35,910 nt of DNA from Basidiobolus meristosporus CBS 931.73 (GCA_002104905.1 MCFE01000795.1:1-35910), one strand, 5' to 3'. Counted from the first letter of the stretch, positions 14,648 to 35,910 are shown. Notes: generated by a model from the letters alone, not told the origin. Numbers and translations: made by a program.

Positions 14648-15443
14648 CTAACGGAACTCGAATGAAGATGATCGCCGAGGAACGTAGTGCAGAACAAGCT
14701 GCTGAATCCGGTGGAAATCCCTATGGGAGTAGTAGCCGGTGGATAGTTGGAAGCATATGTAGTAATACCCTGCGAAGCTGCCCCCGGTCACATCCTCGAC
14801 CCGGTGATCCGGGACCAGAAAACGCTCTTTCCATCGCATGAAGAGGCAGTCCTTATCCATGTGGTCGTACTTGAAGTCCAACCGGTTGAAATCCTTCGCA
14901 TACTCCTCGAACTCCGGGAACCTAAGCTGGGTGGGAGTGGGTTGATGAGTACGTGGTGTTCGCGGGCCCTGCCATCCAAAGCAAATGTACCCAGTGGTTT
15001 ATGTTGATGTTCTCGTGGGTGATCCACTTTCTGGTCAGGAAGGTGTGTTACCGTCTGATGACCTCGGTATCGAAGAAGGTGGTCAGCCCTGGGATTTCCA
15101 AGGTAAGGTTGTGGATGTGTAAATAGCCACAGAGATAAGAGTCCTCCAGGTCCACGTGCTACATTGCATTGACCCGGGTTACCACTTCCCTTCGAAGGAT
15201 CACTAGGCTGTCTTAGGAACACTTACTTGCAGGTTGATGACCACTTCGTAGTCTTTGGCTCCGCTGGATTGTTTGCCCCGGAACTGACTTCCCGGGTAAA
15301 GGGTGCGCGTTCCGGTAGAGAGCTGTCTCATCATATATAAGCAACTAGGCTTCATCCACGATCGTCGGCCTCTCTCTGGGCTCTTCGCAATGCTTCTGAA
15401 TGCTGGCATCCACAGGACTCGGTGACTGAGACGTGGCCGGCAT
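14648..15443 (-). pseudogene. GID4: GID4/VID24 (GID/CTLH ubiquitin ligase substrate receptor), probably disrupted
   Basis: Motifs [37 protein letters not shown] and FMRWKERFLVPDHRV...SFAGYYYICF. Introns 15226-15159 and 14990-14927. In-frame TAA at 15050-15048. The 5' end is unresolved (ATG at 15443 or 15409). Confidence 0.75.
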
Positions 15444-15950
15444 AGTGGGAGTTTGATGGGGGAACGCTGGGTGGCAAGGCCAAAGGTGTCTCCTGGAACG
15501 GTCGGCTGTAGCGACTCTCTATATCGGCGCAGAGTGATCCGTCACAGGGAGCAGGAATGCACACATAGACACCTCTGGGATGTGGTGTCCGACCAATCAT
15601 TAAGGGGTCTCGGTGAAGTATTAAGTTATCCATCGACGCAGGCGACGCGATCAAAAACCCATCCCCGAGTCCAATGAGTATATTTGATACGTGGTGATAC
15701 ATCCTCACCAACGATGCTGATTCCGTGGTTCATGTGCCGCACTTGAAGTTCAATCGCGACGAATGCATGACCAGCGGACTGATGCATGGAGTCATCAGGC
15801 GAGTTTAGCCCAGCTCAGTGGCGTGCTTGCCAACCCACCGTGGTGCTCAACTCGTATGCCATGTAGCAACTACCCATCGCATATAGCCCACTGGCTTAGG
15901 AGTTCGGCGGTATCGCATATGTGAAATTTCCACCAGCGCTAAAGGGTTGC

Positions 15951-16268
15951 TCAGAGCGGAGTGAGTGTGCTGATGGCTAACTGTTGGGCGATCTCACCCA
16001 CTGCCATGCTACAACGACGGAAGAAATCGTCTGCATCTATTTGGAACAATAAGATGGCGCTCACATCGGCTGACCGAACGAATTTGCGTATCTCAGCGTC
16101 CGGGTTACTGTTCAAACCGATAGGTTCTGGTGTTTTCGCACACCAAATCAACCGTGCCACAGTAGCCAGATCCAGCTCGGTTGTTTCAGCGCTCACGTCT
16201 GCGGGCATTTTCTGCGACCACCCTGCCAATATTTCCGCATAAATCAGAGGGACGCTCGAATGACTCAT
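15951..16268 (-). CDS. Hypothetical 105-aa protein
   Basis: ATG-initiated ORF with gene-like composition; no recognisable domain. Confidence 0.25.
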   Translation of the reverse strand: MSHSSVPLIYAEILAGWSQKMPADVSAETTELDLATVARLIWCAKTPEPIGLNSNPDAEIRKFVRSADVSAILLFQIDADDFFRRCSMAVGEIAQQLAISTLTPL

Positions 16269-16809
16269 GATACACTTGGTAGCCCATCCACCACACTCAT
16301 GGTTTGTTGATTGGAAATCCCCTTGACTACTGTATCACAATGAGATCATGAGCAGCAACTTCACCTGACAACGCCATGCCCTAGTTGTTACAGGGCTCTT
16401 TTCGGGAATCTTGGACTTGCACAACAACTCTTCCATTCCATATTTCCCGGACTACCACTCACCACTAACCATGAAAAGGTGTGAAAGCTAAGGGTTGCAT
16501 ATACATATTATCAACCAGAACTGGTTCTTTAGATCCCAGCTTATGTACTCTGTTATTTCCAGCCCAAATTCTAGGTTGAGATCTACCTGGATATCATATG
16601 GTATTCTGCCAGTGTTCTTTGATTTTTCAGTCAATTTTTCCAGTGTTAATGTCTCCAGGGTCAACAAGCTGATGGTTATCCTGCTCAGTATGGGGGTGAA
16701 TCAAACACATCATTTTCAGGTGCATGTTTCCACTGGTTGTCAAAAAGGCTGGACCTCATGGTAATGAGGATTGGCACTCTACTGACCATTTGAGCTTTTT
16801 CTCATAGGG

Positions 16810-16930
16810 CTGTTGGTTTGCCAAGCTCATGAAAATGCCTAAACAATGCTTTTGCATCCCACTGATGATTAAGAAGAAATGTAGTTGGCTTGCTCTTCCA
16901 GTCACTATCAAGGTCTCCAATGGTTCTCAC
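16810..16930 (+). repeat. Highly degenerate copia LTR remnant (host of the solo LTR)
   Basis: Weak similarity to the 3' half of the family LTR. It resumes after the solo LTR as ...ctcacAACA followed by a degenerate PBS (ggtcaagagcccc). Left boundary is uncertain. Confidence 0.55.
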
Positions 16931-17262
16931 TGTTGTAAAAATTTGTATTTCCACCTATATATTCACCTAACTTAGTCACTTAGATCATCACCTTCAAATC
17001 CTAGAGAATACTGACCAAATTCCTTGTCAGGATTTACTTAGAATATTTACCCAGAACATGAAAATTAGATAAGTTGTCCAAACAGCCCCAAACTTTGCAC
17101 ACATGTTCTTGGGACCTTCCTTAACCTATTCTACATGCTTGTAATGCCAAGACCAGGTAAAAGTATAAATACTACTTTTACATTCAATAAATCATTAAGT
17201 GAAAACCAAATAATCTACTTGTCCTCCCAATCACTTCCAATATCTCCAAGACTCTTACAGCA
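16931..17262 (+). repeat. Solo LTR of the copia family with 5-bp TSD CTCAC
   Basis: TGTTGTAAAA...CTTACAGCA, similar to LTR 25142-25487. CTCAC occurs at both 16926-16930 and 17263-17267. Confidence 0.9.
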
Positions 17263-17270
17263 CTCACAAC

Positions 17271-18429
17271 AGGTCAAGAGCCCCAAGCCATCCCCACAGT
17301 AGTGTTGCTACTGCACCTACTACATTCTTCCCCTATTTTGCAAAATTGGATGGACTTGATCATCATGTCACAGGGTGTAATGACATTGTTGTTACAGGAA
17401 AGAGGCTTTTGGATTGTTGCTGTATCATGGGATTACCCCTAAACATGCAGGAGAAGAATTCCTGTATTGTCCAATGAGTGAATCAGGAGCTATAAGCCTG
17501 GTTTGTCTGATCTTCAAGGACCACATGCTAACTGTCAATGCTAAAGAGTTAAAGTTACAAAATTCATCCAAGTAACGCTGAACATCTAGATATCATTGCA
17601 TAAATTTGTAAATGTACCTGAATACTCACTTAGCTTGGTCACTAAGATCATTACCTACATATCTTAGAAAATTCCACCATATCCCTTGTTGGGACTTAAA
17701 TAGAATAGTATAACCAAAACATCAGATACTTAGTACAGGAAATTTTGATAATTGTCCAAACAGCCTCAACCTCTAATCACATGTGCTTGGAACTTCTTGA
17801 ACCATTCACTACATGTTTGTCTTACCAAGATCATCTAAAAGTATATATATCACTTTTACAATCAGTAAACTACTGATTGAAATATATAAAAATTACTTCT
17901 TCTCCCAGTCCCTTCCAATATCTCCAAACTCTTACAGCAGGTTATAAGCCTCAAGCTGTCACTCCTGCCAATGTTTACTACTGCTAACACTAGAATTCTT
18001 GCCTTGGCAGAAATGCTCCATGGATCTAACCACCAAGTCTGGAAGGTGAAGATGAAAATACTGCTACAGCAAAGAGGCCTCTAGGATATTGCTAAGAGAG
18101 TGGAATGTCCTTCTGAAGGGGCAGTAAAAGAAGTCCCAACGTACCAGAAGAAAGAACAATGCATCTTCAGCTGCATATGCCTTAGTGTCAAGGACAAACT
18201 GCTACTTATGTACCCAATAGAAAAACCATAAGGGATGATTGGAGGACATCAGAAGACACCTGTTAGTCATACTCAGCAGTTGAGAAAATGTACAATGGAA
18301 CAATATTCCTTGCTACAGAGATGCTATCAGGGGATGAAGTAAAATATCTAGATAACAGATTTACCCTATTGGCTGATGAGAATAGATGAGATATGTGGGC
18401 ATGCAAGCTATTGATAAGTATGTAACAAT
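17271..18429 (+). mobile_element. Degenerate copia remnants: gag 5' (17271-17593), LTR (~17594-17939), PBS (17940-17950), gag (17950-18429)
   Basis: Nucleotide similarity to the gag and LTR of elements A and C (e.g. caagtctggaaggtgaagatgaaaatactgctacagcaaagaggcc). Many stops. Confidence 0.8.
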
Positions 18430-21400
18430 TGTTGTAAGAGTCTTGGAGATATTGGAAGTGCTTAGGCAAGCATGTAAATTGTGTGGTTTTCATATTATCA
18501 TTTATTAAATGCAAAAGTAGTGTTGGTACTTGAACATGGTCTTGGCATGGCTAACATGTAGGATAGACTCAGAAAGGTCCCAAGATCATGTGTGCAAAGT
18601 TTGGCACTGTTTGGACAACTTATCAAATGCTCATGTTTTGGGTCCTCTGCATCTTGGTGAGAATATTCTCAGCAAATTCCATCAAGGAATTTGGTCATTT
18701 TTCTCTAGGATTTGTAGGTAATGATCCAAGTGACTACACTAGGTGGATATACAGGTGGAATTATAAGTTTTTACAATACTTCCACTCAACTAAATGCTCA
18801 CACTGATCAGTCCTAATTTTGACCTGAGATATTCAAATTTGGCTCTAGCTAGTGGTTTGGTAAATATGTCTGCAATTATTTCATCTGTAGGACAGTAAAC
18901 CAGGTTAACTAAGCTATTCCTTATAGCTTCACCTATGAATTGATGGTCAATATCTATGTGCTTAGTTCTTGCATGAAAAGTTAGATATCTGCATAATTGT
19001 ATGTATCCTTGAATATCTTGAACTAAAGTGATAGGCACTTTCCACCATAAGTCCAAATCTCTACAGGCTTTCTTAACTGCATCACTTCTTTTGTAACTTC
19101 ACAGGCTGCCATATACTCTGCTTCTGTGGTGGAAAGTGCCATGGTTGGTTGCTTTGTTGAATTCCAAGAAATTGCACATTTACTGTAAAGAAAGGTGTAT
19201 ACCATGGTGGATCATCTGTTTTCTAAGCCTTACCCCCAATCAGCGTCAGAGTAACCTGCAAGATCCTGCTCTGCATCTTTAAATGAGTACCTTAAGCAGA
19301 CATCAGTAGCTCTCTTTAGGTATCTAAAAATCCACTTAACTACTGCAATTGGATCAGATCCACAGTTCTGATTATGCTGGCTGAGAAGTTCCACCTAATA
19401 TAAGATATCTGGACATGTTCTAAGCATTATGTACATCACGTTGCTGGCCATAAGCTGATAAGGAAAGCCACAGCTTTCAGATGGCATCAAGCTCTCTTGA
19501 CTTGGTTGAGTTTTGGCCAAGTTTGGGCTTGTCTGCAGTGGGGTAGCTGCTGGTTTACAGTCTTCCATTTGATATCTCTCTAGTTTATCCTAAATATACA
19601 TGGGTTGGCTTAGGGTGATTATCTGGGTACCTCTGTCTATGGAGAGCCTTATCCATAAGCAGTAGCCAAGCTCTATTAGATCTGACATCTTGTACTCCTT
19701 AGATAGGCAGGATTTAGTCCCTTCCAATGTTTCTGGGTTATAAGTGGCTATGATAAGATCATCCACATATAGAGCCAATAGAACTGGATTTGCCCTATCC
19801 GGCTATTCTGGATAATAAGTCTGCAGTGCTCTTTTGGAAACCCAAAGATTCCAAGTATTAATCTATGTTGCAATTCCAGGCTCTCAGTGAATGTTTCACA
19901 CCCTGCAGAGATTTTTTAAGCTTTCAGACCAAATGGGGCTTATATTGGTCAGCAAACACATTAGGCTAGTCCATGTACATGTCTTCATTGGTTCCCCACT
20001 CAAAAATGCAGATTTTACATCCATTTGATGTATAAAAATATGTATTTGACTGCAATAGCTAATATTAATCTGATGAAATTAAATTTGGCTACCAGTGCCA
20101 TGGTCTCCATATAGTCAGGCCCTCTTGTTTGAGAGAATCATTTGTCTACAAGTCTTGCTGTGCATCTTTTGATTGTACCATAGGCTTGAATATTGTATTG
20201 AAGACCTATTTGCATCCAGATGATTTTTGGTTCACTGGTAATTCACTAAGTCCCATATTTGATATTCCATCAGAGCCTGATCCTCCTCAGTCATGGCAGA
20301 TCTCCAAAACTTTATCTGAGGACTATATAGGGCCTCTTTTAGAGTCTGGGAATCATTGATATGGACTGAATAGGCATAGGTTAAGTTTGTACCCTCATTG
20401 ATATGGTAATTTGGGCTATTTCAGGTCCAGTAGGATCTCCTGAGCTATGATACCGGAATGATCTCCTCTAGGATGTTCCTTGGTACTGATTCAGGCTGAA
20501 CCACAGTTGTAGAGTCCTCTGGGATGAAAACATTCTCATTTTTTGCTCTGATTTAATCCTGACCATTGGTGGACTAGAGGTGAGATTCTTGTCATCAACT
20601 GATGTCATTTTTGGTGGAAGTTTTCAATTTTCATGCTCTGCACTTGGTCTGTATCCATACCATGCTTCACATGGAGTAGAAATACAAAATATTCTGTTAT
20701 AACTCCTCTTTATATGATATACAGCAGTGGCAACTGATTCCACCCATAAATCATAGGATAATTTTTGATCATGGATCATAGATCTTGCCATATCATTTAT
20801 TGATCTGTTAGCATATTCTACTACTCCATTTTGCTGTGGGGAGTATTGTACAGTAGTCTCTTGCATTATTCCATGAATTTTGCAGAAGTTGATGAAGAGC
20901 TTTGAGGTATATTCTCCACCATTGTCAAAGTGTATTTTCTTGATTTTTTCACCAGTTTCTCTCTCCACCATGGCTTTAAACTCCCTGAGCTTAGACAGAG
21001 CTTCTTCCTTTCTCTCCATGAGTTAGACCCATGTGTATCTGGTATAATCATCAACAAAAATGATTAAATACTTCATCCCACCTACGGATAAATTTTGCAT
21101 AGGTCCACACAGATCTGAGTGAGTTAGATCTAATTTTTTTTAGTTTGGATTGACACAGAGCTCTTGAACAGTTGTCTGGCCTGTTTCCTATATATACAGG
21201 CTTCACAGTGCTCCAAATTAGCTGGGGATCAATTTTTACTCCAGAAATTAGCTGATCTTTGATCATTTTGTGAAAATAATCAAAATTGATGTGCCCAAAT
21301 CTCCTGTGCCAAAGCATTGGTGATTCTTCATTTAAGTTACTTATATTGGCTTCCAAATATGATAGAACATAAGTCAACTTGTATAGATTTTGATCTCTGA

Positions 21401-22920
21401 TACCCAAAGTAATATGGGTACCATTTTCATCAGTGATCTTGCATCCAGAATTGTCAAAGCTGATACTGAGTCCTTCTGCAGTGGCCTTGCTTACAGATAG
21501 TAGGTTCTTGGCTATTTCTGGTACATAGAGTACTTCTTTGAAGGTCAGTGTATGGCTTCCATCACTGCTTCTTAGGTTTACTTGGATAATTCCTTTTCCC
21601 ACTGCATCAAGTGTTCTATTGTCACCCATGAAAACCTTCTTAATTGGAATTTCTTGATATTGGGTAAAAAGTTCATTTTGGTGTGTAAAGTGTTTAGATG
21701 CTCCATAGTCCATACACCACATCTGAGAATCCTTGTATGTGGTCATATTTAGTGCAGATATAAATAGTCTATCTTCAGTTGCTGCAGCATTTCCATATTC
21801 AGGCTTTTCCTGCTGACTATCTTTCATTTTGAAGCACTGGTCTGATGTGTTCCTTTCCTTTTGCAGTAGTTGCAAAACAGGTTGCTGTTGCCTTTGTAGG
21901 GTCTTGGGTATCTCCTTTGTTGGCTATCATTGCTTATTAAAGCATTTTCGTCTTCCTTCTTATTGGCGCTTGATTTTCTTAATTCTTCATCCATGAGCCT
22001 TCCATATACGTAATTTAAAGTCAAATCTTCAGTTCTGGACTCTAGGGCTGATACAAGGCCCTGAAACTTGTCTGTCAGGCTATTCAGGATGGTAACTATT
22101 ACATCCTCATCAGTAGTTGGTACACCCACATATTCCATCTCATCTACCAGCAGGGTAATTCCATTAATTAGATTTTTCATTTCTTCTCCTGGCAGCATCT
22201 TTGTAGTAAAGAATATTTGTCTCAGATACATCTTCTTGGCAGCTGAACATGACTGGTAGGTGTCTTCTAATGCCTTCCAGGTGTTGTTTGCCATTTTTGC
22301 TCTTGAGCATTGAATTAGCAACTTGTCCTTGACATTAAGGCAAATGCAGTTAAAGGCACTTTGTTCTTTCTTCTGGTACTTTAAGGCTTCCTCTCCCACA
22401 TTTTTAGGAGGGCATTCTTCTCCCATGACAATATCCCAAAGGCCTCTTTCTTGTAGCAGCATCTTCATCTTCACCTTCCACACTTAGTAGTTAGATCCAT
22501 CCAACTTTTCAGCAGAGGGAAAAATTCCAGTAATAGCAGTAGTAGACATTGCAGAGAGTGACAGCTTGGGGCTCATAACCTGTTGTAAGGGTCTTGGAGA
22601 TATTGGAAGTGACAAGTAGATGATATGGTTTTCACTTAATGATTTATTGAATGTAAAAGTAGTGTTTATACTTTTACCTGGTCTTGGCATTACAAACACA
22701 TAGAATAAGTTAAGGAAGGTCCCAAGAACATGTGTACAAAGTTTGGGGCTATTTGGACAACATTGAGAATTTTCATGTTTTGGGTACCTGGTATTTTGGT
22801 GAAAATATTCTAAGTAAATCCCAACAAGGAATTTGGTCAGTATTCTCTAGGATTTGAAGGTTATGATCTAAGTGACTAAGTTAGGTGAATATTTAGATGG
22901 AAATACAAATTTTTACAACA
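18430..22920 (-). mobile_element. Ty1/copia LTR retrotransposon 'A', near full length, defective, probably chimeric
   Basis: 3' LTR 18430-18778, PPT-like TTGAGTGGAAG adjacent to it, then RNase H, RT (ALYVDD), integrase, protease and gag fragments, PBS 22569-22580, 5' LTR 22581-22920. Domain order is GAG-PR-INT-RT-RH. No TSD (ACAAT vs AATTC). Confidence 0.93.
18790..22549 (-). pseudogene. Copia gag-pol pseudogene of element A
   Basis: gag WKVKMKMLLQERGLW and zinc knuckle CNYCKRK; protease WCMDYGASKHFT; integrase WHRRFGH and PQQNGVVEYANRS; RNase H ALSTTEAEYMAA and RTKHIDI. Multiple stops and frameshifts. Confidence 0.9.
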
Positions 22921-23620
22921 AATTCCATATTGAAAGGTGTAGAAGTTGGCCTGTGACCAAGAGAAATCCAGCCTACCTTGGTAGAGTTTTCCAAATAAAA
23001 ATTAGTTGCTTGTTGCACCCAACCCTACTATGCATTACTTAACTGATGACCCACACATTGGGGCTTCTTAGCTTGTTAGTGCCATAGGCATAGGGGTCTC
23101 CAAGTGAACATCTGTCCTCAGTATTTTCCACCTCTTCCTGGCTGTCCTCCATGTGCCAGCTCATCACATCCATGACAGACTTGAAGGTAATATTCTTGAT
23201 GAGATTGGGGTAAGGTAGTACCTTCAACCTGACCTGTGTTCCTCTCTCCCCACACATCTGCTCCATAGGAAACTCCCACAAGGTGAAGCAAGGCCCAATA
23301 TTCACCACACACCATGCAAGATGGAGTAGATAATGGATACAGTGGCAGCAGAGATCTATGCATTCAGCTTTATGTTTATAGTATAGCCACTCAAATTCAG
23401 TCACAAACTCCTAGCACAACACCCTGATGTAAAATTATTGAGGTGATCCCATCAAAAGGCCATCACAAAGTTGAAGCCCTGTGGCAAAGAGGTACTGATT
23501 CCATTAGAACACTGTCCAGAGAGTGTTGAAAAATAGTTGCGCCTCAGATTTCACAAAAAACTTGGTCAAAATGTTTCATCACAACAATGTATAAGCGGCT
23601 TTTGACTGGTTCCCTGCCAA
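22921..23620 (-). pseudogene. CACTA/EnSpm-like transposase C-terminal fragment
   Basis: EFVTEFEWLYY...IHYLLHLAWCVVNIGPCFTLWEFPMEQMCG resembles the conserved H-x-L-x-H...GP...W-x-F-x-x-ER motif of tnp2/CACTA-like transposases. Boundaries approximate. Confidence 0.7.
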
Positions 23621-25487
23621 TTTGCTCACATGCTGATCCCAGACACTCTATTGCCTCCTATGTTTGTGTGCATTGTTTGGCTGTTGCCTCTTTTTCACAC
23701 TCCTTACTTCCTGACTCAACCATTTCTCTTACTTTTGATGCGTACAAATTGATTTATTTCTGTTGAAACTTCAGTTGTACCTCAATTTCCAATTGTATTT
23801 GTTGTAAGAGTCTTGGAGATATTGGAAGTGATTGGGAAAACAAGTAGATTATGTGGTTTTCACTTGATGATTTATTGAATGTAAAAGTAGTATTTATACT
23901 TTTACCTGGTCTTGGCATTACAAACATGTAGAATAGGTTAAGGAAGGTCCCAAGAACAAGTTTGCAAAGTTTGGGGCTGTTTGGACAACTTTGAGAATTT
24001 TCATGTTCTGGGTACCTGGTATTTTGGTGAAAATATTCTAAGTAAATCCCAACAAGGAATTTGGTCAGTATTCTCTAGGATTTGAAGGTGATGATCTAAG
24101 TGACTAAGTTAGGTGAATATTTAGGTGGAAATATGAATTTTTAACAACAATAAGGAAAGTCAGGGCTTTCAGATGGCACCAAGCTCTCTTGATTTGGTTG
24201 AGTTTTGACCAAGTTAAGGTTTGTCTCCATTGGGGTAGCTGCCGGGTTACAGTCTTCCATTTGGTACTTCTTTAGTATATCTTGAATATACTTGGATTGA
24301 CTTAGGGTGATAGTCTGGGTACTTCTGTGTATGGAGAACTTAATCCCTAAGTAGTAACTAAGTTCTCCTAGATTGGACCTCTTGAACTCCTTAGATAGGC
24401 TGGATTTAGTCTCTTCCAATATTTCTAGGTTATTGGCGGCTATAATAAGATCATCCACATATAGAGCTAATAGAACTGGATTTGCTCTATCTGGCTTATA
24501 GTATATACTATAGTCAGCATTACTCCTTTTGAAACTCAAAGATTCCAAATAAGAATCTATCTTGCAATTCCAGGCTCTTGGTGATTGTTTAAGACCATTT
24601 AGTGACTTTTTAAGCTTGCAGACCAAATGGGGGTTATTTTGGTCAACAAACCCATCAGGCTGGTCCATATACATGTCCTCATCAAGTTCTCCATTCAAAA
24701 GTGCAGTTTTTACATCCATTTGATGAATAAAAAACTTATATTTGGCTGCAATAGCCAATATTAATCTGATGGAATTAAACTTGGCTACCAGTGCAAAGGT
24801 CTCAGTATAGTCAAGTCCTTTTGTTTGAGAGTATCCTTTGGCCACAAGTCTTAAAGGCACTTTGTTCTTTCTTCTGGTACTTTAAGGCTTCCTCTCCCAT
24901 ATTTGTAGGAGGGCATTCTTCTCCCATGACAATATCCCAAAGGCCTCTTTCTTGTAGTAGCATCTTCATCTTCACCCTCCACACTTGGTATTTAGATCCA
25001 TCCAACTTTTCAGCAGAGGGAAAAATTCTAGTAATAGCAGTAGTACACATTGCAGAGAGTGACAGATTGGGCTCATAACCTGCTGTAAGAGTCTTGGAGA
25101 TATTGGAAGTGATTGGGAGAACAAGTAGATTATGTGGTTTTTGTTGCAAAACTTTGTATTTCCACCTAAATATTCACCTAACTTAGTCACCTAGATCATC
25201 ACCTTCAAATCCTAGAGAATACTGACCAAATCCCTTGTTGGGATTTACTTAGAATATTTTCACCAAAATGCCAGGTACCCAGAACATGAAAATTCTCAAA
25301 GTTGTCCAAACAGCCCCAAACTTTGCACACATGTTCTTGCCTTCCTTAACCTATTCTACATGTTTGTAATGCCAAGACCAGGTAAAAGTATAAATACTAC
25401 TTTTACATTCAATAAATCATCAAGTGAAAACCACATAATCTACTTGTTTTCCTAATCACTTCCAATATCTCCAAGACTCTTACAACA

Positions 25488-25499
25488 GGTTATGAGCCC
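25488..25499 (+). promoter_or_regulatory. Primer-binding site GGTTATGAGCCC (internal, half-tRNA-iMet type)
   Basis: Directly follows the LTR-terminal CA. It is the reverse complement of GGGCUCAUAACC, the anticodon stem-loop of initiator tRNA-Met. Same site at 25069-25080 and 22569-22580 on the minus strand. Confidence 0.85.
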
Positions 25500-25518
25500 C
25501 AAGCTGTCACTCTCTGCA

Positions 25519-26358
25519 ATGTCTACTACTGCTATTACTGGAATTTTTCCCTCTGCTGAAAAGTTGGATGGATCTAACTACCAAGTGTGGAAGGTGAAGA
25601 TGAAGATGCTGCTACAAGAAAGAGGCCTTTGGGATATTGTCATAGGAGAAGAATGCCCTCCTAAAAATGTGTGAGAGGAAGCCTTAAAGTACCAGAAGAA
25701 AGAACAAAGTGCCTTTAACTGCATTTGCCTTAATGTCAAGGACAAACTGCTAATTCAATGCTCAAGAGCAAAAATGGCAAAGAATGCCTGGAAAGCATTG
25801 GAAGACACCCAACAGTCATGTTCAGCTGCCAAGAAAATGTATCTGAGACAAATATTCTTTACTACAAAGATGCTGCCTGGAGAAGAAATGAAAAATCTAA
25901 TTAACAGAATTACCCTGCTGGTAGATGAGATGGAATCTGTGGGCGTACCAACTACTGATGAGGAAGTGATAGTTACCATCCTGAATAGCCTGACAGATGA
26001 GTTTCAGGGCCTTGTATCAGCCCTAGAGTCCAGAACTGAAGATTTGACCTTAAATTATGTATATGGAAGGCTCCTGGATGAAGAATTAAGAAAATCAAGC
26101 GCCAATAAGAAGGAAGAAGAAAATGCTTTAATAAGCAATTATAACCAACAAAGGAGGTACCCAAGACCCTACAAAGGCAACAGCAACCTATTTTGCAACT
26201 ACTGCAAAAGGAAAGAACACACATCAGACCGGTGTCTTAAAAAGAGAGATTATCAGCAAAAGAAGCCTGTATATGGAAATGCTGCAACAACTGAAGATAG
26301 ACTATTCATATCTGCACTAAATATGACCACAAACAAGGATTCTCAGACGTGGTATATG
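25519..26358 (+). pseudogene. Copia gag of element C
   Basis: MSTTAITGIFPSAEKLDGSNYQVWKVKMKMLL, in-frame TGA at 25672-25674 (GGA in element A), zinc knuckle CNYCKRKEHTSDRC. Truncated just before the protease active site. Confidence 0.9.
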
Positions 26359-26714
26359 TCAACCAAACTTTTTTTAATTTAGAACTATAGATCTTAGTTT
26401 AAACCTTTTTTCCAACTTTTGTTTTTAAATTCTAATTTTAAATATGATGTTTGATGTTTGATATTTGTTTTTTAAATTCAAATTTTAATATTTAAATATG
26501 GTTTTTATAAACTTCTTTTAATCTGAAACTTTAAACCCTAGTTCAAACTCTCTCCACCAAAACTCTTTCAACCAAACTTAATCTTTCTACTCCCAAACTC
26601 TCTTGACCCAAACCTTTCCGACTCCCAAACTTTCTCCACCAAAACTCTTTTATAATCTAACACCTAAACATTTGCTGACAAACTATTTTATATTACCCTA
26701 ATCTCAACTACTGG

Positions 26715-26822
26715 TTTAAAAAACTTTTCACGCAAACTATTACTATCAAACACAAACCATTGCCTTTAAAAAACTTTTCACGCAAACTGTTAATATCAAA
26801 CATAAACCATTGCTTTTAAAAA
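26715..26822. repeat. Tandem direct repeat, 2 x 50 bp
   Basis: TTTAAAAAACTTTTCACGCAAACT at 26715 and 26765, plus the start of a third unit. Confidence 0.9.
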
Positions 26823-26834
26823 AAATATATACAT

Positions 26835-26928
26835 ATTATATACACAGGTATTATAACCACTGACTAGAACAAAAATATATAAATATTATATACAAACATA
26901 TTACAACCGCTGACTAGAACAAAAATAT
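26835..26928. repeat. Second tandem direct repeat with 50-bp period
   Basis: TGACTAGAACAAAAATAT at 26861 and 26911; ATTATATAC at 26835 and 26885. Confidence 0.9.
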
Positions 26929-27012
26929 GCGCTATATACGTACAATTAAATACTACCCATTTTAACCCAAAAACATACACCATTTATCACCCAGCACACT
27001 TTTTGATTAAAT

Positions 27013-27680
27013 TTGGAAATTTTAAAGGTATTTATACCATATTTGTGTTTGTATGTCCCTCCCTATTTTTCCAATATATCCCAAACCATTTTTGGAAAAA
27101 AATTCGTCAAAAAATTACCTTATATAGACAATCATGGAATAGTTATCCAACATAGTGGTAATTGCATGTATTCCAAGTTTGACAATTTAAACGCATTCCA
27201 ACACTGGTACCTTAATCTCAAACCAACCCAACGCCTCTTTGCCAAAATTATTGGATTGGGCCCCCAAAAATTTAGACTAGAACTAGACAGTGACATCTCA
27301 GATCCCCACATCCTCATCCAAGATGTCCAAAACGTTTTCCACATTATGGGTCACGGCACCCCACAAATTTTGTATTACAACATCTCCTCATCAGAAAAAA
27401 TGTCATACCATCTTATTGTATCATCCCACTATTTCTCTGACAACATCTCTTGCAAAATTTTTACCAATTCCCTGATCCAATTCTCACAAATCTCTCCCTG
27501 GACTCTATGTGTCAATACTGGCGTATACAAATCGGTTCAAGGTTTCCGCCTCAAAGGTAGCACCAAATGGCAACAAAAAAGATGGAAGTACTTATTTGGC
27601 ACCCAACAAATTAATCCCAAATCTTTCCCTGATAGCTTATTGGGTAATATTAATACACAAACTATGCGCCTCATCTCATA
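27013..27680 (+). pseudogene. Archaeo-eukaryotic primase (AEP, PrimPol/large-DNA-virus-like) domain fragment
   Basis: Motif I-like PQKFRLELDSD, motif II SYHLIV (SxH) and motif III-like CVNTGVYKSVQGFRLKGSTK, in the expected order and spacing. Probable real start ATG 27053 (MSLPIFPIYPKP) joined by a 1-nt frameshift. Truncated at the junction with copia. Confidence 0.7.
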
Positions 27681-29892
27681 TAGAACAAGCTAACAGATCA
27701 ATAATTGATATGGCAAGATCTATGATCCATGACCAAAAATTATCCTATGATTTTTGGGCGGAATCAGTTGCCACTGCTGTATATCTTAAAAATAGGAGTT
27801 ATAACAGAATTCTTTGTGATTCTACTCCATTTGAAGCATGGTATGGATACAGACCAAGTGCAGAACATCTAAGAATACTTGGGTGTACAGCATATGCCAA
27901 AAAACTGGCCAGAAATCAGTCAAAATTTGAGCCAAAAAGTGTAAAATGCATATTTTTGGGCTACTGCAACAAGAGTAAGGCATGCAGACTCTACAATACC
28001 AAAGCAAAGAAGCTGATCAAGTCCAGGGATGTGTTGTTTGATGAAAATTCAAAATTTTCACAAAAAATACATCAGATGATGACAAAAATTTGATCTCAAG
28101 TCCACTAATTGTCAGAATTGAATCAGAGCAAAACAATGAAAATTTTTTCACTCCAGAGGACTCTACAACTGTGGTTCAGCCAGAATCAGTGCCCAGGAAT
28201 ATCCCAGAAGTGATCATTCCAGTATGAAATGCCCGGAGATCCAATTGGACAAGAAATAGCCCAAATTACTATATTAATGAGGGTACAAACTTAGCCTATG
28301 CCTATTCAGTCCATATTGATGAGCCCCAGACTGTAAAAGTGGCCCTAAATGGCCCTCAGACAAAGTTTTGGAGATCTGCAATGACTGAGGAATATCAGGC
28401 ACTGATGGAAAATCAAACTTGGGACTTAGTCAAATTACCAATCAACCAAAAATCAATTGGATGCAGATGGGTCTTCAAGACAAAATACAAGGCTGATGGT
28501 ACAATTGAAAGATACAAAGCAAGACTTGTAGCCAAAGGATACTCTCAAACAAAAGGACTTGACTATACTGAGACCTTTGCACTGGTAGCCAAGTTTAATT
28601 CCATCAGACTAATATTGGCTATTGCAGCCAAATGTAAGTTTTTTATTCATCAAATGGATGTAAAAACTGCATTTGTGAATGGAGAACTTGATGAGGATGT
28701 GTATATGGACCAGCCTGATGGGTTTGTTGACCAAGATAACTGCCATTTGGTCTGCAAGCTTAAAAAGTCATTATATGGTCTTAAACAATCACCAAGAGCC
28801 TGGAATTGCAAGATAGATTCTTATTTGGAATCTTTGAGTTTCAAAAGAAGTAATGCTGACTATAGTATATACTATAAGCCAGATAGAGCAAATCCAGTTC
28901 TATTAGCTCTATATGTGGATGATCTTATTATAGCCGCCAATAACCTAGAAACATTGGAAGAGACTAAATCCAGCCTATCTAAGGAGTTCAAGATGTCCCA
29001 TCTAGGAGAACTTAGTTACTACTTAGGGATTAAGTTCTCCATAGACAGAGGTACCCAGACTATTACCCTAAGCCAATCCAAGTATATTCAAGATATACTA
29101 AAGAAGTACAAAATGGAAGACTGTAAACCGGCAGCTACCCCAATGCAGACAAACCTTAACTTGGTCAAAACTCAACCAAATCAAGAGAGCTTGGTGCCAT
29201 CTGAAAGCCCTTACTTTCCTTATCAATCAATGGTCAGCAGTCTGATGTATATCATGCTTGGAACATGTCCAGATATCTCATATTCAGTGGGAGTTGTCAG
29301 CCAACATAATCAGAATTATGGATCTGATCATATTGCAGCAGTTAAGCGGGTTTTTAGATACCTAAAAGGAACTGCTGATATCTGCTTAAGATACACTTAT
29401 AAGGATTCAGAACAGGATCTTGTGGGATACTCTGATGCTGATTGGGGACAAAATTTGGAAGCCAGAAGATCCACCACAGGATACACCTTTCTTCACTGTA
29501 AAGGAGCAATTTCATAGAATTCAAGAAAGCAACCAACCGTGGCATTTTCTACTACAGAGGCAGAGTATATGGCAGCCTGTGAAGCTACAAAAGAAGCAAT
29601 GTGGTTAAGAAAGCTCCTTACAGATTTAGGCCTATGTCAAAAAAAACTTATTACTTTATTTCAAGATAATCAAGGATGTATACAATTAGGTAAAAATCCA
29701 ACTTTTCATGCTAGAACCAAGCACATAGATTTTAGACATCATTTCATACGTGAAGCTATAGAGAATAACTTAGTTAGCTTAGTTTACTGTCCTACAGATG
29801 AAATGATTGCAGACATATTTACCAAGCCATTAGCTAGAGACAAGTTTGAATATCTTAGGTCAAAATTAGGACTAGTCAGTATGAACATTTAG
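27681..29892 (+). pseudogene. Copia pol remnant of element C (integrase C-half, RT, RNase H)
   Basis: ANRSIIDMARSMI, FEPKSVKCIFLGYC; RT YKARLVAKGYSQ, QMDVKTAF, LYGLKQSPRAW, LYVDD; RNase H GYSDADW and STTEAEYMAA. Frameshift near 28090, a further stop near 28226, and TAG at 29515-29517. Confidence 0.93.
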
Positions 29893-30297
29893 CTGAGTGG
29901 GAGTGTTGTAAAAATATGTATTTCCACCTAAATATTCACCTAACTTAGTCACTGAGATCATCACCTTCAAATCCTAGAGAATACTGACCAAATTCCTTGT
30001 TGGGATTTACTTAGAATATTTTCACCAAAATGCCAGGTACCCAGAACATGAAAATTCTCAAAGTTGTCCAAACAGCCCCAAACTTTGCACACATGTTCTT
30101 GGGACCTTCCTTAACCTATTCTACGTATTTGTAATGCCAGACCAGGTAAAAGTATAAATACTACTTTTACATGGTCTAGGCATAACAAGCACTTAGTATA
30201 GATTAAGGAAGATCCCAAGAACATGTGTACAAGGTTTGGGGCTATTTGGACAACTTTGAGAATTTTCATGTTCTAGGTACCTGGTATTTTGGTGAAT

Positions 30298-31030
30298 AGA
30301 CTTGTTCGGTTGGATAGTGCCACATTGAGCCATGAGTGCCAAATGATGCCATAGTGTGCCAGAGAGGTCACGTGAGCCTATACTTGGCCACAGAGTGTGA
30401 AACATAGCTCTGCATCTTCATGTAAAGCAGCCCCTGTGTTTCACCCATTGTGCAGGAGAAAATCCATTTTTTGACCTTTTTTTGTGGATCAATATAGCTC
30501 AGGATGTGTAAGAGCACAGGAGAGCTGAAGATTTGCATCTGGTACTCAATACCCATGGCACTCTGAATCTATCTCCTGTAGCTAGTATCATGTCACAAAA
30601 ATGAAATGCACTATCTTGGTCCACTGGCACTATCTGGCACTATAAGTGCTTTGTATAGATCTTATTTTAGGGCTAATATTTAACTTTAGTGCCAGATAGT
30701 ACCAGTGGATCAAGATAGTGCCATTCATTTTTGTGACATGATACAAGCTACAGGAGCTAGACTCAGAGTGCCATGGGTATTGAGTACCAGATGCATATCT
30801 TCAATCTGCTTGTGCTCTAACACATCCTGCACAACATTGATCCAAAAAAAAGGTCAAAAAAAGGATTTTCTCCAACACAATGGGTGAAACACAGGGGCTG
30901 CTTTGCATGAAGATGCGGAGCTATGTTTCACACTCTGTGGCCAGGTAAAGGCTCATTTGGCCTCTCTGGCACACTATGGCATCATTTGGCACTCATGGCT
31001 CAATGTGGCACTATCCAACAGAACAAGTCT
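30298..31030. mobile_element. Foldback MITE (733 bp) of the adjacent Harbinger-type family, TSD AAT
   Basis: Inverted arms 30298-30642 and 30687-31030 around a 44-bp spacer. Termini AGACTTGTTC...GAACAAGTCT with AAT on both sides. It interrupts the LTR of element B. Confidence 0.92.
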
Positions 31031-31235
31031 AATATAATCTAAGTAAATTCCAACAAGGAATTTGGTCAGTATTCTCTAGGATTTGAAGGTAAAGATCTAA
31101 GTGACTAAGTTAGGTGAATATTTAGGTGGGAATTACAAATTTTACAACAGTATTGACCTATGCAAGTCCTTGTACCCTACACTAGTATTAATCCCAACCC
31201 TACACTAAGCAAATAACTCCATTGAAATCCACTAC

Positions 31236-32108
31236 TCAATAAGTATTTCTGCTGTAACACTCTAGTTCCACAACTGTGGTGGGAACCTTATTCCAATTAA
31301 TTCTGTATTCTGGCCAATGGCTTATAGCTTGCCAACTTTGCTGCAATTGCAAGCTGCCTTCTGTATGCTTTCTCTGTGGAATGATGATGTTCTTAGTGCT
31401 GGTGTTTGGGTAATAACAATGTGTGTGAGTTATGGAGTAAGTCCCCGGGATCTCACACATTTGACAGCAATACCATCCATTGTGCCTAGAAAAACCTGCT
31501 ATCTTGCTGATGTCTGGGGTATCTTCAATGCAGATAATAACACAAGCTTTTACATGACAGCCATTTACTGTTATCCCACTGGAAAGCATACAAAATTCAT
31601 CCTGCAATGGATGCAGGTAGCAATCCAGGTTGGACTATGATTTAGGCCCAGATATCAGTGAGACTACCATCTGATCATTGCGTTGATACCATAGGATAGG
31701 TGGCAGATTCAGATTGATGAGAGTCAGTGGCCACTAGGACTTCCTGGTATAGTACTTATTTAATGAGAATTCATCAAGTGCTAAGGCAAAGGCATGGTCA
31801 ATAATACCTTTGAAGTAGCCCTTGCTTCTTAGCTGTTTGAAATGTTTGCCATCAAATACATTGGATATTTTTGCGCTTGATTGATACTGAGTGCAGTATA
31901 AGACTTGATTCATTTTACCATGCCAGGGTGCACGCCATGATCTGCAGTCTTTAAGAACAATCAGGCACAATATTATAGCTACCAGTAGGCAGGATTGCTC
32001 TTGGACAATTTTGCACCATGTGGGACAATCTTGCACACTATGGACAATCTGACACAATGAGGTTGCACAGATGATTGCATCAATTTGTAACATTTGCATC
32101 ATGTGCAC
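31236..32108 (-). pseudogene. CACTA/EnSpm-like transposase N-terminal/central fragment
   Basis: ISNVFDGKHFKQLRSKGYF...AFALALDEF and EDTPDISKIAGFSRHNGWYCCQMCEIPG...HCYYP resemble tnp2/Transposase_21 motifs. Stops and frameshifts. Confidence 0.7.
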
Positions 32109-32219
32109 AATTAAATACCTCTATTATGGTAGGTAAAATCTGGTATTTGGATGTGTTTCTTCAATGTAAATGGAATGTGTATTGCACTATAAAGTACACT
32201 CATACTTACCATTTTAGTT

Positions 32220-32420
32220 ACCATCACTCTGCTCCAATGGACTTGAGTCTAAATGAGCAGTTTGGCAAGTTCTGGTGGTTTTGCTCAGAAGCGGATGAGT
32301 TGACACAACATGCGTTAACTTGATGTGGGGTGCTCTTGTGAAGGGTGTTGGCATAGTTTGCACTGATGTACGCCAGTGTGGTGGTGTAGAGGTACTCCTG
32401 GGAGAAGCTACACAACTCAA
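32220..32420 (-). pseudogene. Decayed copy of the 3' part of Harbinger ORF2
   Basis: Reverse complement aligns with ~35515-35690 (e.g. CCAGAACTTGCCAAACTGCTCATTTAGAC is identical). Confidence 0.8.
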
Positions 32421-32607
32421 GGTATGTGGGGTGTCTGATGGGTGCAATAACCTCTGTGTCTAAGCTGCTAGTGTCTTTATCAATATGTCACTATGGTAAA
32501 AGCTCCTGCTTCTCTAGCTTCCTAGATGCTCCAAGTGTCTTCAAAGGCCTCTGTGTGTCTTGTGCACTACCCTGAAAAGCTCCTTGATGGCAAGTGTGAG
32601 GTGTAAC

Positions 32608-33180
32608 TGTTAAAGGTAGGTGCAGTGATCAACTGCTAATCAATAAGGGAGAAGTGTTACTGATAGAAGGGATGATTTATTGATGAGGGATTGCTTTCCC
32701 TCAAATATTTCTCCTGATTGCCAAGTGATTACCAATGACAAGGTTCTAGAAAATTCTAGGTATCAGTGGAATTCTTGATGACATCACTATGAGCTAAAAA
32801 TATGCCAAGAATGTCCTGGATGGTTCTAAAAGGCACAGCACATTCAACCAATCAGGAATCAGTAGTCTGAAACCTGTGCAACATAGAATACCATATATGG
32901 TATTGAAATGGTAGGGATGGTAACACAGACCTAGGTCATGTGTCATGGGTACTGACGCGGGTACTTGCCTTATGTAGATATATATACTGATCACAAAGCT
33001 GAATAACATCTGGGATAACTAATGCTAATAACTAATCAGGGTAAACATCATATGGGGATAATACTGATAATATGGGCAAAAGCAGAATGGGACAATACTG
33101 ATAAGATAAAATATGGATAAGTATATTATAATGACTATATGAATAAACTTGTCTGTGGGAGGTATGTTTACCCTACCACA
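32608..33180. repeat. Possible LTR of a second, unrelated retroelement family
   Basis: 573-bp non-coding block bounded by TG...CA, with AATAAA on the minus strand. It begins exactly where the ORF2 remnant homology stops at 33181. No TSD found. Confidence 0.4.
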
Positions 33181-33399
33181 CCGGCATGCTGAAGTTGCAA
33201 GGGATGGTAAGAGATCCAGCAAGGCATGCTGGTGCAATCTAGATGCTGTTGCTTGTGATCTGTATTCTTCCTCCTGAAGCTCACCATCTGATTCCTCATG
33301 GTATTCCTTACACTCTGTCTGATTCTTTGGAACTGTTGCCTAGATGAGTTCTGTTTATATTACTCTTAGAAGCAACCTGGCTCTACTAATATATCACAT
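33181..33399 (-). pseudogene. Decayed copy of the central part of Harbinger ORF2
   Basis: Reverse complement aligns with ~35308-35528 (GAGGAATCAGATGGTGAGCTTCAGG is identical), with many CpG to TG/CA differences. Confidence 0.88.
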
Positions 33400-33585
33400 A
33401 ATAGACTTGTTCCGTTGGATAGTGCCACATAGTGCCAGCCGGTTTATAGTGCCGGATTGATCTGGCACTCTACGGCACTATCTGGCACTATAATTTCTAC
33501 CATAATGCCAGTGGTATGATACAGTTACTGGTAATTTTACTCAATCTTACTTATGTTGCTCAGAATAGTGCTTTCCTTGCTTTAT

Positions 33586-34470
33586 TTACTCTTCATAATG
33601 CTCCAGACACATTTCTCTCAGTGGATGTCTTCTTGTATGAACATACTGTGCATTGATAAGTATCTTAACTATTTTACCTATTCTGCTGTTTTCTCTTATA
33701 TATGACTTTGCTCTGTAATTACCAGCCAATATGCTAAATCTCTTCAGATATCCAAATGTGTGCTCTACCCTCACTCTAAAATGATTAAATATCTCATTGT
33801 AGAGCTTCTGCTTCCTGCTAAGCACACCATTCCTTGGCTTCCTATAAGCTGTAATACATCCTAATCTCTGACAATCCTCTCCTATATAGGCCAAGTCTGC
33901 CATACATTTCTCCCCTCTACTGAATTCAGGATGATTCTCTACCCAGAGTGCTTTGTCATGCCTACTTCCAGCAAATAGCCCACTAAACCAGATGATGTTA
34001 CCCTCAATGTCAGACAGTGCTTGAAACTTCACACAGTGTACCTTGTACTTGCCAGAATAAAAGTGCCTCTGCCCTCTAGAAGGTCTGTTAATCCTCACTG
34101 GGAAGGTATCCAAAATACTCCTGATATGGAACCTGTTGCTGAACACTCTGGGATATGGAAGTCTATTGGAGCTTCTAAACCTAGTATTCCAAGCTTGCTC
34201 TAAGTCATTCATACCCTCTGCAAGGTGGTTCTCCATTGCTGTCAGCTGGGAATGAAAGCTTCTAGGACTTTTGTTGCCATGCATGGTGGGATGAAACCTT
34301 GTAGGGCAATAGTTCTTGTAATAGCAGAGAAGCTTAACAAGGGATCTCCTTGAGTAGATTGGGGTTGATGGTCCACAGTACTTGGAATAGATCTCCTCCA
34401 GTGTGTCAAAAGGAAATCCAGTGGTAGTGATGGGATTGATGAGAAAAGACCATTCAGATGAGTAAGTCAT
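33586..34470 (-). CDS. PIF/Harbinger (DDE_Tnp_4/HARBI1-like) transposase, 294 aa, intact
   Basis: SILDTFPVRINRP (D), FYSGKYKVHCVKFQ, GSRHD, MADLAYIG (D), RVRVEHTFGYLKRFSIL (E). No stops. Confidence 0.9.
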   Translation of the reverse strand: MTYSSEWSFLINPITTTGFPFDTLEEIYSKYCGPSTPIYSRRSLVKLLCYYKNYCPTRFHPTMHGNKSPRSFHSQLTAMENHLAEGMNDLEQAWNTRFRSSNRLPYPRVFSNRFHIRSILDTFPVRINRPSRGQRHFYSGKYKVHCVKFQALSDIEGNIIWFSGLFAGSRHDKALWVENHPEFSRGEKCMADLAYIGEDCQRLGCITAYRKPRNGVLSRKQKLYNEIFNHFRVRVEHTFGYLKRFSILAGNYRAKSYIRENSRIGKIVKILINAQYVHTRRHPLREMCLEHYEE

Positions 34471-34829
34471 ATTAAAATTGATGGATGATTGTATGGAGGC
34501 GGTTTGAATTGATTTGGCGCGATCTGCGTTATTTATCTGATTTTTAACACATTATGGTTAAATCTCCATCAATTGCCATGTATCCCATCATTATGTCCCA
34601 AAAATCATCCGCAAAAAATGCCTTGGTACTTTTATTGATGCTTTAATCATAGGTCTATAATCAAATAGGAAATCTGCAATTGATGTGATCTGATCTGTGT
34701 CAACGCGATCCAAGATGCATCATGCATAATATATGGAAAATTCAACAATCACTTTAGTTTTCATAAATATTTCATATAAGACCAGGTTGATGCCAATATA
34801 CTGCTGTATAAGTATCCAAATCCGTTGCT

Positions 34830-35720
34830 ATGGTCCCCATACCAAGCCTCAACTCATCTTTAGTACAACCCAGACAAAACCCATCCCCCAGCTCACAAGC
34901 GCGGTCCGGACCGGAAAAGTTGATGTCAGATCTGTTCGAGTTCTTGCCAAATGATTTTAGTATGGCCCAAGTGTCTATGATGAGCCTTCATACAGATATT
35001 TGGGCACTACTGATTAATCTAGCAGAACTAGATACCTCAGAGAGTCGACAAAGATGGAAGAATTTGAGTAGAAAGCTGTGGCATGAGTTCTACATCAAGA
35101 TGCCAGCCGATGTATGTAAAAAGATATATAACAAGACAAGTATTGAAGTCAAGAATGAGCTGAGAGTGAGGGGATTTGACAAGGAAGCCGTGCGGGAACG
35201 ATTTCGCGCGCAATTTGCACAGTACGGGCCGGACACATCCGTTCGTGCCTCAACTTTGGGAACCAAAGAGATTTTGAATGAGTTTTTGCCTCAAATGACT
35301 AATGTACTACGCGATATATTAGTAGAGCTAAGTGGCTTCCGAGAGCAATATACACAGGACTCATCCAGGAAACAGCTCCAAAGTATCAGACAGAGGGTAA
35401 GTGAATACCTTGAGGAATCAGATGGTGAGCTTCAGGAGGAAGAATACAGACCGCAAGCAACATCGTCCAGATTGCGCCAGCACGCCGTGCTGGATTCCCT
35501 ACCATCTCTTGCAACCACAGCACGCCGGCGCACATCAGTCCAGACTACGCCAACACCCTTTACCAGAACGCCCCGTGTTGAGTCAACGTGCATTGAGTCA
35601 ACGCGCGTTGGGTCAACGTGCGCGCTTCAGAGCAAAACTACCAGAACTTGCCAAACTGCTCATTTAGACACAAGGCCATTGGAGCGGACCAAGTCGCGTC
35701 AACATGCGGCATCACATTGA
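34830..35720 (+). CDS. Harbinger accessory ORF2, probable Myb/SANT (trihelix-like) DNA-binding protein with low-complexity tail
   Basis: IWALL...RQRWKNLSRKLWHEFYIKMPADVCKKIYNK fits the W...W...C spacing of Myb/SANT-like domains. Divergent from the transposase, as is common for Harbinger two-ORF elements. The true start may be ATG 34923. Confidence 0.6.
   Translation: MVPIPSLNSSLVQPRQNPSPSSQARSGPEKLMSDLFEFLPNDFSMAQVSMMSLHTDIWALLINLAELDTSESRQRWKNLSRKLWHEFYIKMPADVCKKIYNKTSIEVKNELRVRGFDKEAVRERFRAQFAQYGPDTSVRASTLGTKEILNEFLPQMTNVLRDILVELSGFREQYTQDSSRKQLQSIRQRVSEYLEESDGELQEEEYRPQATSSRLRQHAVLDSLPSLATTARRRTSVQTTPTPFTRTPRVESTCIESTRVGSTCALQSKTTRTCQTAHLDTRPLERTKSRQHAASH
35577..35621 (+). repeat. 3 x 15-bp tandem repeat with quasi-palindromic core
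   Basis: GTTGAGTCAACGTGC / ATTGAGTCAACGCGC / GTTGGGTCAACGTGC, encoding VESTC-IESTR-VGSTC. Confidence 0.85.
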
Positions 35721-35910
35721 ACTCAGCCAAGGGCCATCTCAACGCGTCAAGGCGTGCCTGCGCGTGCCCTTTCGCCTGACCATCAGCAAGTTACTTCTGG
35801 TGAACTGACTGATGATGACCAACATGAAGTGCCTCAACCACCGGAGCCCTTGGCAAGTAAAAGAACGCGTCAGCACGTGGCACTACAGGCCCGGTTCAGT
35901 TGGTTCAGTC

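Follow-up and report, generated by a model that had tools for sequence, protein, structure and literature searches.

How does a gene for a DNA primase come to lie inside a copia retrotransposon, what was its source, and can it still function there? The question is raised by a 35,910-nucleotide stretch of the genome of Basidiobolus meristosporus CBS 931.73 (GCA_002104905.1, MCFE01000795.1:1-35910; hereafter the window), in which an earlier note had described a virus-like primase cassette swapped into a copia element. We refer to the element that carries the foreign DNA as copia B and to two neighboring copia copies as A and C. Taken as a whole, the evidence is best explained by a dead primase gene fragment from a pithovirus-like element of the type named fundsalphaviruses, which most likely entered copia B through DNA repair. 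We give this reading a probability of about 0.6.

A foreign block within copia B

Comparison of the window with itself by BLAST delimited the foreign DNA. Copia B matched copy A at 93.3% identity on the left (25132-26358 with 22930-21711) and at 92.0% on the right (27681-27868 with 20820-20633), such that 1,322 bp of B (26359-27680) stood in place of 890 bp of A (21710-20821). In junction alignments the left break was clean, at 26358/26359, and the right one fell inside 27677-27680, where no more than three bases were ambiguous. The insert was AT-rich and G-poor, with a GC content of 0.30-0.35 and a GC skew of -0.38 to -0.67. Tandem repeats of 7-50 bp occupied its first half, and a 226-codon open reading frame (ORF) at 27013-27693 carried the primase motifs named in the earlier note. 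No terminal inverted repeat or flanking duplication was found in a search of the insert edges. In all of these respects (boundaries, composition, absence of terminal repeats and target site duplications, and the motif-bearing ORF) the earlier description was borne out. The non-coding DNA upstream of the primase gene contained no long ORFs, and Rfam and tRNA scans of the insert region were empty. Feature coordinates are collected in Table 1.

The recipient is a Ty1/copia element by its domain order (Retrotran_gag_2, SH3_retrovirus, RVT_2) and by long terminal repeats (LTRs) with TG..CA ends. Both LTRs remain, the 3' one lacking ~79 bases, and a purine run precedes the 3' LTR, as had been proposed. 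The claim that the replaced stretch had encoded protease, pre-integrase, and the N-terminal half of integrase was correct for the first two. For integrase, practically the whole core is gone, leaving the SH3-like C-terminal part. B is a defective copia, since it lacks the protease, pre-integrase, and integrase core that are found in A. The second gag ORF enters the insert for eight codons and then meets a stop. The pol sequence that remains downstream is broken up into three or more ORFs, and the primase ORF does not share its reading frame. Therefore, no fusion protein is made and copia B cannot express pol.

Copia B sits exactly between two pieces of a copy C LTR (25081-25141 and 30146-30296), and the three C pieces listed in Table 1 tile one LTR. 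Copia B is a single nested insertion unit. Alternatively, a viral remnant might have been at this site all along, with an independent truncated copia copy on either side. The region is full of truncated copies, and the 5' LTR of B is no closer to its own 3' LTR (95.6%) than to the LTR of the neighboring copy (96.5%). However, the outer ends of B adjoin complementary portions of a single C LTR (positions 1-268 and 289-346), as a single nested insertion would predict, and on this basis we rejected two independent copies. The two halves are also co-oriented with only 890 bp missing between them, and the window contains no other viral gene fragment. We consider a two-copy origin very improbable.

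Repeat-dense regions such as this one also invite the suspicion of an assembly chimera, with junctions that do not exist in the organism. Such an error would require two misjoins within one element, in the correct orientation. The insert differs by ~4% from its sole other known copy and hence is not a misplaced piece of that locus, and the structure agrees with the nested arrangement of the LTRs. An artifact of this kind is thus exceedingly unlikely.

The insert encodes part of an archaeo-eukaryotic primase

A protein word search with the window ORF returned three matches, all Basidiobolus-type and 278-282 aa in length, two of which are hypothetical proteins of B. meristosporus and B. ranarum. 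The ORF shared 92%, 83%, and 75% amino acid identity with these proteins (P0001, P0002, and P0003, respectively). Their alignment showed that the window holds the first 201 of ~280 residues and lacks a conserved Cys/His-rich tail of ~80 residues. The full-length gene is intronless.

Searched alone against Pfam, PHROGs, and PDB, the window ORF gave no real match (a hit to CFAM166A at an expectation value, E, of 0.06 was noise), and the full-length relatives gave none in Pfam. An exhaustive profile search recovered 1,338 relatives at E ≤ 1e-3, including 371 at E ≤ 1e-10, and this family has no Pfam model. An alignment of 76 relatives was used to define its conserved features. Invariant or nearly so were an acidic pair, S-x-H, a further Asp, an Arg and a Lys, and a Cys-Cys-His-Cys cluster. 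The acidic pair, S-x-H, and Asp are motifs I, II, and III of the archaeo-eukaryotic primases (AEPs), and in the family and the full-length Basidiobolus proteins each was invariant or at least 90% conserved.

Profile and fold searches agreed with the motifs. Against PDB, the 76-member profile matched human PrimPol over both halves of the catalytic core (E 1.7e-15) and the AEP domain of vaccinia virus D5 and monkeypox virus E5 (E 6e-6 to 5e-5). Individual members touched the Pfam models AEP_C962R (2 of 76) and DNA_primase_S (1 of 76), in each case below the cut-off. An AlphaFold2 model built from the 76-relative alignment reached a mean confidence (pLDDT) of 93; an initial model from three sequences (pLDDT 42.6) was discarded. 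Foldseek comparison of the model with PDB returned PrimPol, D5/E5, African swine fever virus (ASFV) PrimPol, and herpes simplex virus primase, all with probability 1.00. In BFVD, it matched many primases of nucleocytoplasmic large DNA viruses (NCLDVs), and the top nine matches were annotated as 'DNA primase' or 'DNA helicase/primase' of Pithovirus, Cedratvirus, and Orpheovirus (E 8e-20 to 1e-15). Long relatives were fused to a UL9-type helicase (Pfam Herpes_ori_bp). Single-protein patterns applied to IMG/VR yielded no confirmed relative.

The gene product is an AEP of the PrimPol / NCLDV-herpes clade; motifs, profile, and fold all fit. This upholds the identification made in the earlier note, together with its remark that such primases are often fused to a helicase. 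Judging from family membership, the acidic triad and S-x-H motif would have enabled the protein to synthesize primers for replication of the viral genome. The C-terminal Cys/His zinc module presumably assisted, with a separately encoded D5-type helicase acting alongside.

An ordinary cellular gene of the PrimPol type could also have supplied the fragment. Human PrimPol was the best match among solved structures, and P0001, encoded on a 154-kb contig, carries the annotation of a hypothetical host protein. However, PDB contains no pithovirus primase, and the pithovirus-type match in the viral library (E 1e-19) surpassed that to PrimPol (E 3e-9), with the caveat that the two libraries differ. Moreover, the gene is intronless and always accompanied, in compact arrays, by an Rpb1-like gene and other NCLDV core genes. 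Its composition is unlike that of host DNA, and only three proteins, all Basidiobolus-type, matched in the word search. We therefore attach very little weight to a cellular source. The pithovirus-type primases as best structural match and the compact virus-like arrays beside the Rpb1-like gene instead point to a viral origin, as originally suggested. None of the refuting outcomes listed in the earlier note came up.

We also considered whether the 280-aa protein might be a divergent form of Rpb1 domain 1, with an intron between it and the next gene. This was rejected, since profile and fold identify the protein as an AEP and relatives have Rpb1 domain 1 elsewhere. Two relatives from the family profile search, P0144 and P0155, were of note. 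In a protein of the chytrid Gaertneriomyces sp. JEL0708, annotated as host RPB1, Rpb1 domains 1-5 are followed by this AEP, so that a viral fossil seems to have been taken for a host gene. The other family member, assigned to a Phenylobacterium metagenome bin, is probably a mis-binned viral contig.

A donor-type locus in a virus-derived context

Most of the insert (26571-27677) matched another B. meristosporus contig, MCFE01000148.1 (locus L001, 7296-8602), at ~96% nucleotide identity, non-coding tandem repeats included. The portion upstream of the gene (26571-27075, against L001 7296-8000) was ~95-96% identical. There the window had fewer copies of a 50-bp tandem repeat, with ~2 copies at 26715-26928 and several more in L001 7440-7850. 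The composition of L001 resembled that of the insert, and divergence between the two was 3.7-4.5%. The first 212 bp of the insert shared repeat families with the L001-matched part. Since the window fragment reaches 212 bp further upstream than that of L001, and the L001 fragment much further downstream, neither copy was derived from the other.

An exact 12-nt direct repeat was observed with both copies inside the insert (26359-26370 and 26568-26579). The first copy comprises the first 12 bases of the insert, and the second lies where L001 homology starts. It may reflect chance in low-complexity DNA or may be a trace of the origin of the unmatched 212-bp block.

Fragments of retrotransposons flank L001 in its fungal contig, which is 154 kb long. 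An Rpb1-like gene (Pfam Rpb1 domains 2-5) lies within ~50 bp after the primase gene in each of the three Basidiobolus-type loci, and L001 then has an Rpb5-like ORF. The order primase then Rpb1 was common to L001-L004. The Rpb1-like gene of L001 contains one in-frame stop and no frameshift. With its adjacent NCLDV core genes, its integration in a host contig, and its decay, L001 has the character of an endogenous NCLDV-like element. It also contains a boundary of its own with copia. Reverse transcriptase (RT) homology of a different copia family (in L001 6909-7296) ends at 7295, and the co-oriented viral block starts at 7296. This is a second, independent junction between copia-internal and viral sequence.

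The nearest relatives from outside lay on ~20-kb contigs (L004-L006) packed with virus-type genes. These encoded DNA polymerase B, SNF2 helicase, a capping-enzyme-like protein, split Rpb1, Rpb2, Rpb5, D5_N/SF3 helicase, TFIIS, UDG, and an XPG-type nuclease. The D5-type helicase, encoded by a gene of its own, shows no likeness to this AEP. Spacers in the relatives' compact arrays measured 20-100 bp. When the gene products of the virus arrays were searched against the window by tblastn, only the primase fragment was found.

The three contigs (L004 1-18665, L005 1-16580, and L006 1-16010) come from assemblies of sequencing runs ERR14048323, SRR27942956, and SRR10906887 and are ~19.8-19.95 kb long. 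They are devoid of retrotransposon sequence, and their NCLDV-type replication and transcription genes are tightly packed. Within the parts examined, neither a capsid nor a packaging gene was recognized. Possibly they derive from pithovirus-like genomes that are live or well preserved.

Endogenous 'fundsalphaviruses', pithovirus-related NCLDV fossils, have been described in B. meristosporus and other fungi (Gong, Zhang & Han 2020, PMC7017919). Retrotransposons often adjoin these fossils, and a DNA-polymerase phylogeny indicated their pithovirus-like affinity (PMC7017919). Our literature searches found no later description. The chimera in the window is real, although viral fossils of this class have previously been reported from Basidiobolus. 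Its donor class is already described, unlike the primase-encoding mobile element that the earlier note had offered as one alternative. We also asked whether the repeat-rich upstream DNA might represent one end of a linear viral genome that had become joined to copia. This idea was unsupported, as the primase is immediately preceded by other genes in L002 and L004.

The captured gene is dead

In the window, the primase gene has lost its start codon and its last ~80 codons, which encode the zinc module. Over the 201 codons that remain there are no internal stops and no frameshifts. Among the 22 family columns conserved at 90% or above, 10 fall in the missing part, and 3 of the 12 retained columns are changed in the window copy. 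Relative to L001, we counted 5 synonymous and 16 non-synonymous changes, which corresponds to a ratio of non-synonymous to synonymous substitution rates (dN/dS) of 0.82. Among the three lineages, by comparison, dN/dS was 0.09-0.18. These values imply a gene that was strongly constrained for most of its history and two B. meristosporus-type copies that have evolved neutrally since they split. The primase fragment of the window is non-functional. Rather than a working 'cassette', the insert consists of a truncated and decayed two-thirds of a gene together with ~0.7 kb of non-coding DNA.

Route of entry into copia

The donor was a virus-derived locus, and one event swapped 890 bp of copia for 1,322 bp. 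How this happened is less certain. We favor break repair at the DNA level, to which we assign about an even chance. A break in an already integrated copia would have been repaired with an ectopic, virus-derived locus as the template. In this single event, protease, pre-integrase, and integrase core would have been lost, the 1,322 bp gained, and the gag-pol frame killed. Repair is favored because the insert starts with ~0.7 kb of non-coding tandem repeats, in contrast to the 20-100 bp spacers of the compact relatives. It is also favored because those rearrangements in this transposon nest that can be judged occurred at the DNA level. Examples nearby include the dissimilar LTRs of A (78% alike), the internal deletions of C, and the ~100-bp deletion at the 3' end of B, to which the L001 7295/7296 junction can be added.

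Capture at the RNA level would invoke RT within a copia particle, switching to a co-packaged transcript of a virus-derived locus and back again, after which the non-autonomous chimera would integrate, served in trans by intact copies. Retro-mobilization in trans, as envisaged in the earlier note, may have taken place. Capture of gene fragments by LTR retrotransposons is known, for example from maize Bs1. Template switching would fit the common orientation of insert and copia, the clean junctions with 0-3 nt of overlap, and the status of B as one inserted unit with both LTRs. It would likewise fit the second co-oriented copia/virus junction in L001 and the position of retrotransposons beside viral fossils (PMC7017919). 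If capture and integration were one event, the divergence of insert from donor should be similar to that between the LTRs, as is found. In turn, the model needs two non-homologous switches and a captured piece that opens with ~0.7 kb of tandem-repeat, non-coding DNA, unlike a compact mRNA, and it is at odds with the DNA-level character of the rearrangements that can be judged in the nest. Searches with ORFs from the window, which covered protein records and no genome, found no second copy of the junctions. We regard template switching as possible, though rather unlikely.

Several observations weigh against our preferred reading of a pithovirus-like fragment introduced by DNA repair. The insert and copia are co-oriented. 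The divergence between insert and L001 (3.7-4.5%) is close to that between the LTRs of B (4.4%), which fits capture at transposition as well as afterwards. No donor was matched to the first 212 bp of the insert (26359-26570), which lack a counterpart in L001; the block there is interrupted by a copia fragment. Lastly, the label 'pithovirus-like' is drawn from the ranking of fold-search matches and the published DNA-polymerase phylogeny, and is used here in that qualified sense. Exact look-ups of three window ORFs, one of them spanning the left junction, found no record, and a protein word search with the junction-spanning gag ORF found none at E ≤ 1e-30, a result that is uninformative on the copy number of the chimera.

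A more general proposal is that Basidiobolus LTR retrotransposons capture resident giant-virus-like DNA during reverse transcription and carry it to new sites, with the window and L001 as two products. We offer it tentatively and think it improbable on present evidence. If true, copia elements would be a vehicle that multiplies and scatters viral fossils in fungal genomes.

The surrounding transposon nest

Copia B was inserted into an older element. Copy C (23800-25141, minus strand) is an internally deleted copia, in which an LTR end and the start of gag are joined to a piece of RT that is in turn joined directly to an LTR. The two elements, B and C, are arranged head-to-head, B being nested in the 5' LTR of C. 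Where the 3' end of B meets C, ~100 bp are missing; the 3' end of B has been deleted together with any target duplication. 'Element A' (18429-22930), which had been treated as one element, proved to be composite: the two LTRs share only 78% identity, and the 92-93% identity to B falls to 83% beyond a 172-bp indel at 20633/20634.

The LTR of C is also split by a 735-bp near-perfect palindrome (30297 to ~31030) that is 89% self-complementary. Its ends resemble a 40-bp stretch (33398-33437) located beside an ORF for a PIF/Harbinger-type DDE_Tnp_4 transposase (33586-34470, minus strand). The palindrome may be a foldback derivative of a PIF/Harbinger-type transposon, or one resembling a miniature inverted-repeat transposable element. 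Across the window, composition shifts from a GC content of ~0.50 with long ORFs (1-16000) to ~0.38 (16500-35910), the latter part being a nest of copia, LTR, and DNA-transposon fragments.

Table 1. Features of the foreign insert, copia B, and the neighboring copia copies A and C
Feature	Position	Strand	Basis or remark
Whole foreign insert, 1,322 bp	26359..27680	+	Copia homology ends and restarts; GC 0.30-0.35, strongly negative GC skew
Non-coding, repeat-rich DNA (717 bp), upstream of the primase gene in the donor-type locus	26359..27075	+	L001 match, repeats
Broken AEP primase gene, first 201 codons	27076..27678	+	Identity to P0001-P0003, profile, fold, decay counts
5' LTR of copia B, 346 bp, TG..CA ends	25142..25487	+	
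gag region of copia B, split over two ORFs	25492..26358	+	Pfam Retrotran_gag_2, E 4e-24; 93% to A
Remaining pol of copia B: integrase SH3-like C-terminal domain, RT, RNase H	27681..29903	+	SH3_retrovirus, E 4e-25; RVT_2, E 1.7e-82
3' LTR of copia B, without last ~79 bases	29904..30172	+	95.6% to 5' LTR
Part of A equivalent to the loss in B: protease beta-barrel, GAG-pre-integrase, integrase core	20821..21710	-	
Left piece of copy C LTR (positions 289-346)	25081..25141	-	Older, opposite copia into which B nested
Right pieces of copy C LTR (positions 118-268 and 1-119, respectively)	30146..30296 and 31031..31149	-	

Significance and comparison with known systems

For the window itself the consequence is small, as the fragment is non-functional and its carrier copia defective. 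Beyond it, the locus provides a base-resolved case in which DNA from a giant-virus relative has been fragmented and interleaved with retrotransposons in an early-diverging fungus, an association that had only been noted before (Gong et al. 2020, PMC7017919). The analysis also flags a large family without a Pfam model, with more than 1,300 members in a representative library, of stand-alone AEP primases bearing a C-terminal zinc module. This family is a consistent neighbor of split Rpb1 in pithovirus-like elements, and its members are now annotated as 'hypothetical' or mis-annotated as host genes.

The closest known counterparts are the fundsalphaviruses (PMC7017919). They share with the donor-type loci the host genus, and with the related loci a gene set comprising DNA polymerase B, SNF2 helicase, methyltransferase/capping functions, split RPB1, RPB2, RPB5, and D5 helicase. 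A pithovirus-like affinity and retrotransposons beside the elements are likewise common to both. Two differences stand out. The fundsalphavirus report lists a D5 helicase-primase and no stand-alone AEP primase gene (PMC7017919), and the window holds only a 1.3-kb fragment, which lies inside a copia element rather than beside one.

Among primases, those of Pithovirus, Cedratvirus, and Orpheovirus (e.g. A0A481ZAK7 and W5S590) are the best structural matches, covering the AEP core and C-terminal module. Their sequence identity is low (18-25%), and the Pithoviridae-type proteins are longer (334-570 aa, compared to ~280 here). The profile match to human PrimPol (PDB 5l2x, 7jk1) takes in the R-x-x-S-x-K stretch, with a Foldseek E of 3e-9 and a TM score of ~0.55. 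However, human PrimPol is cellular and intron-bearing, has a large insertion in its core, and is only 18-20% identical, whereas the context here is viral. Poxvirus D5/E5, ASFV PrimPol (C962R), F1055L, and herpesvirus primase, compared as named search hits, belong to the same AEP clade by profile and fold. The F1055L type has a UL9-type helicase, as do the long relatives of this family. In the D5/E5, C962R, F1055L, and herpesvirus types, the AEP forms the N-terminal domain of a large primase-helicase, in contrast to the separate ~280-aa protein described here.

As a chimera, copia B resembles the capture events typified by maize Bs1, in that a foreign coding fragment in the sense orientation replaces internal coding sequence between the LTRs. 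It differs from them in that the captured DNA is virus-derived and includes non-coding repeats.

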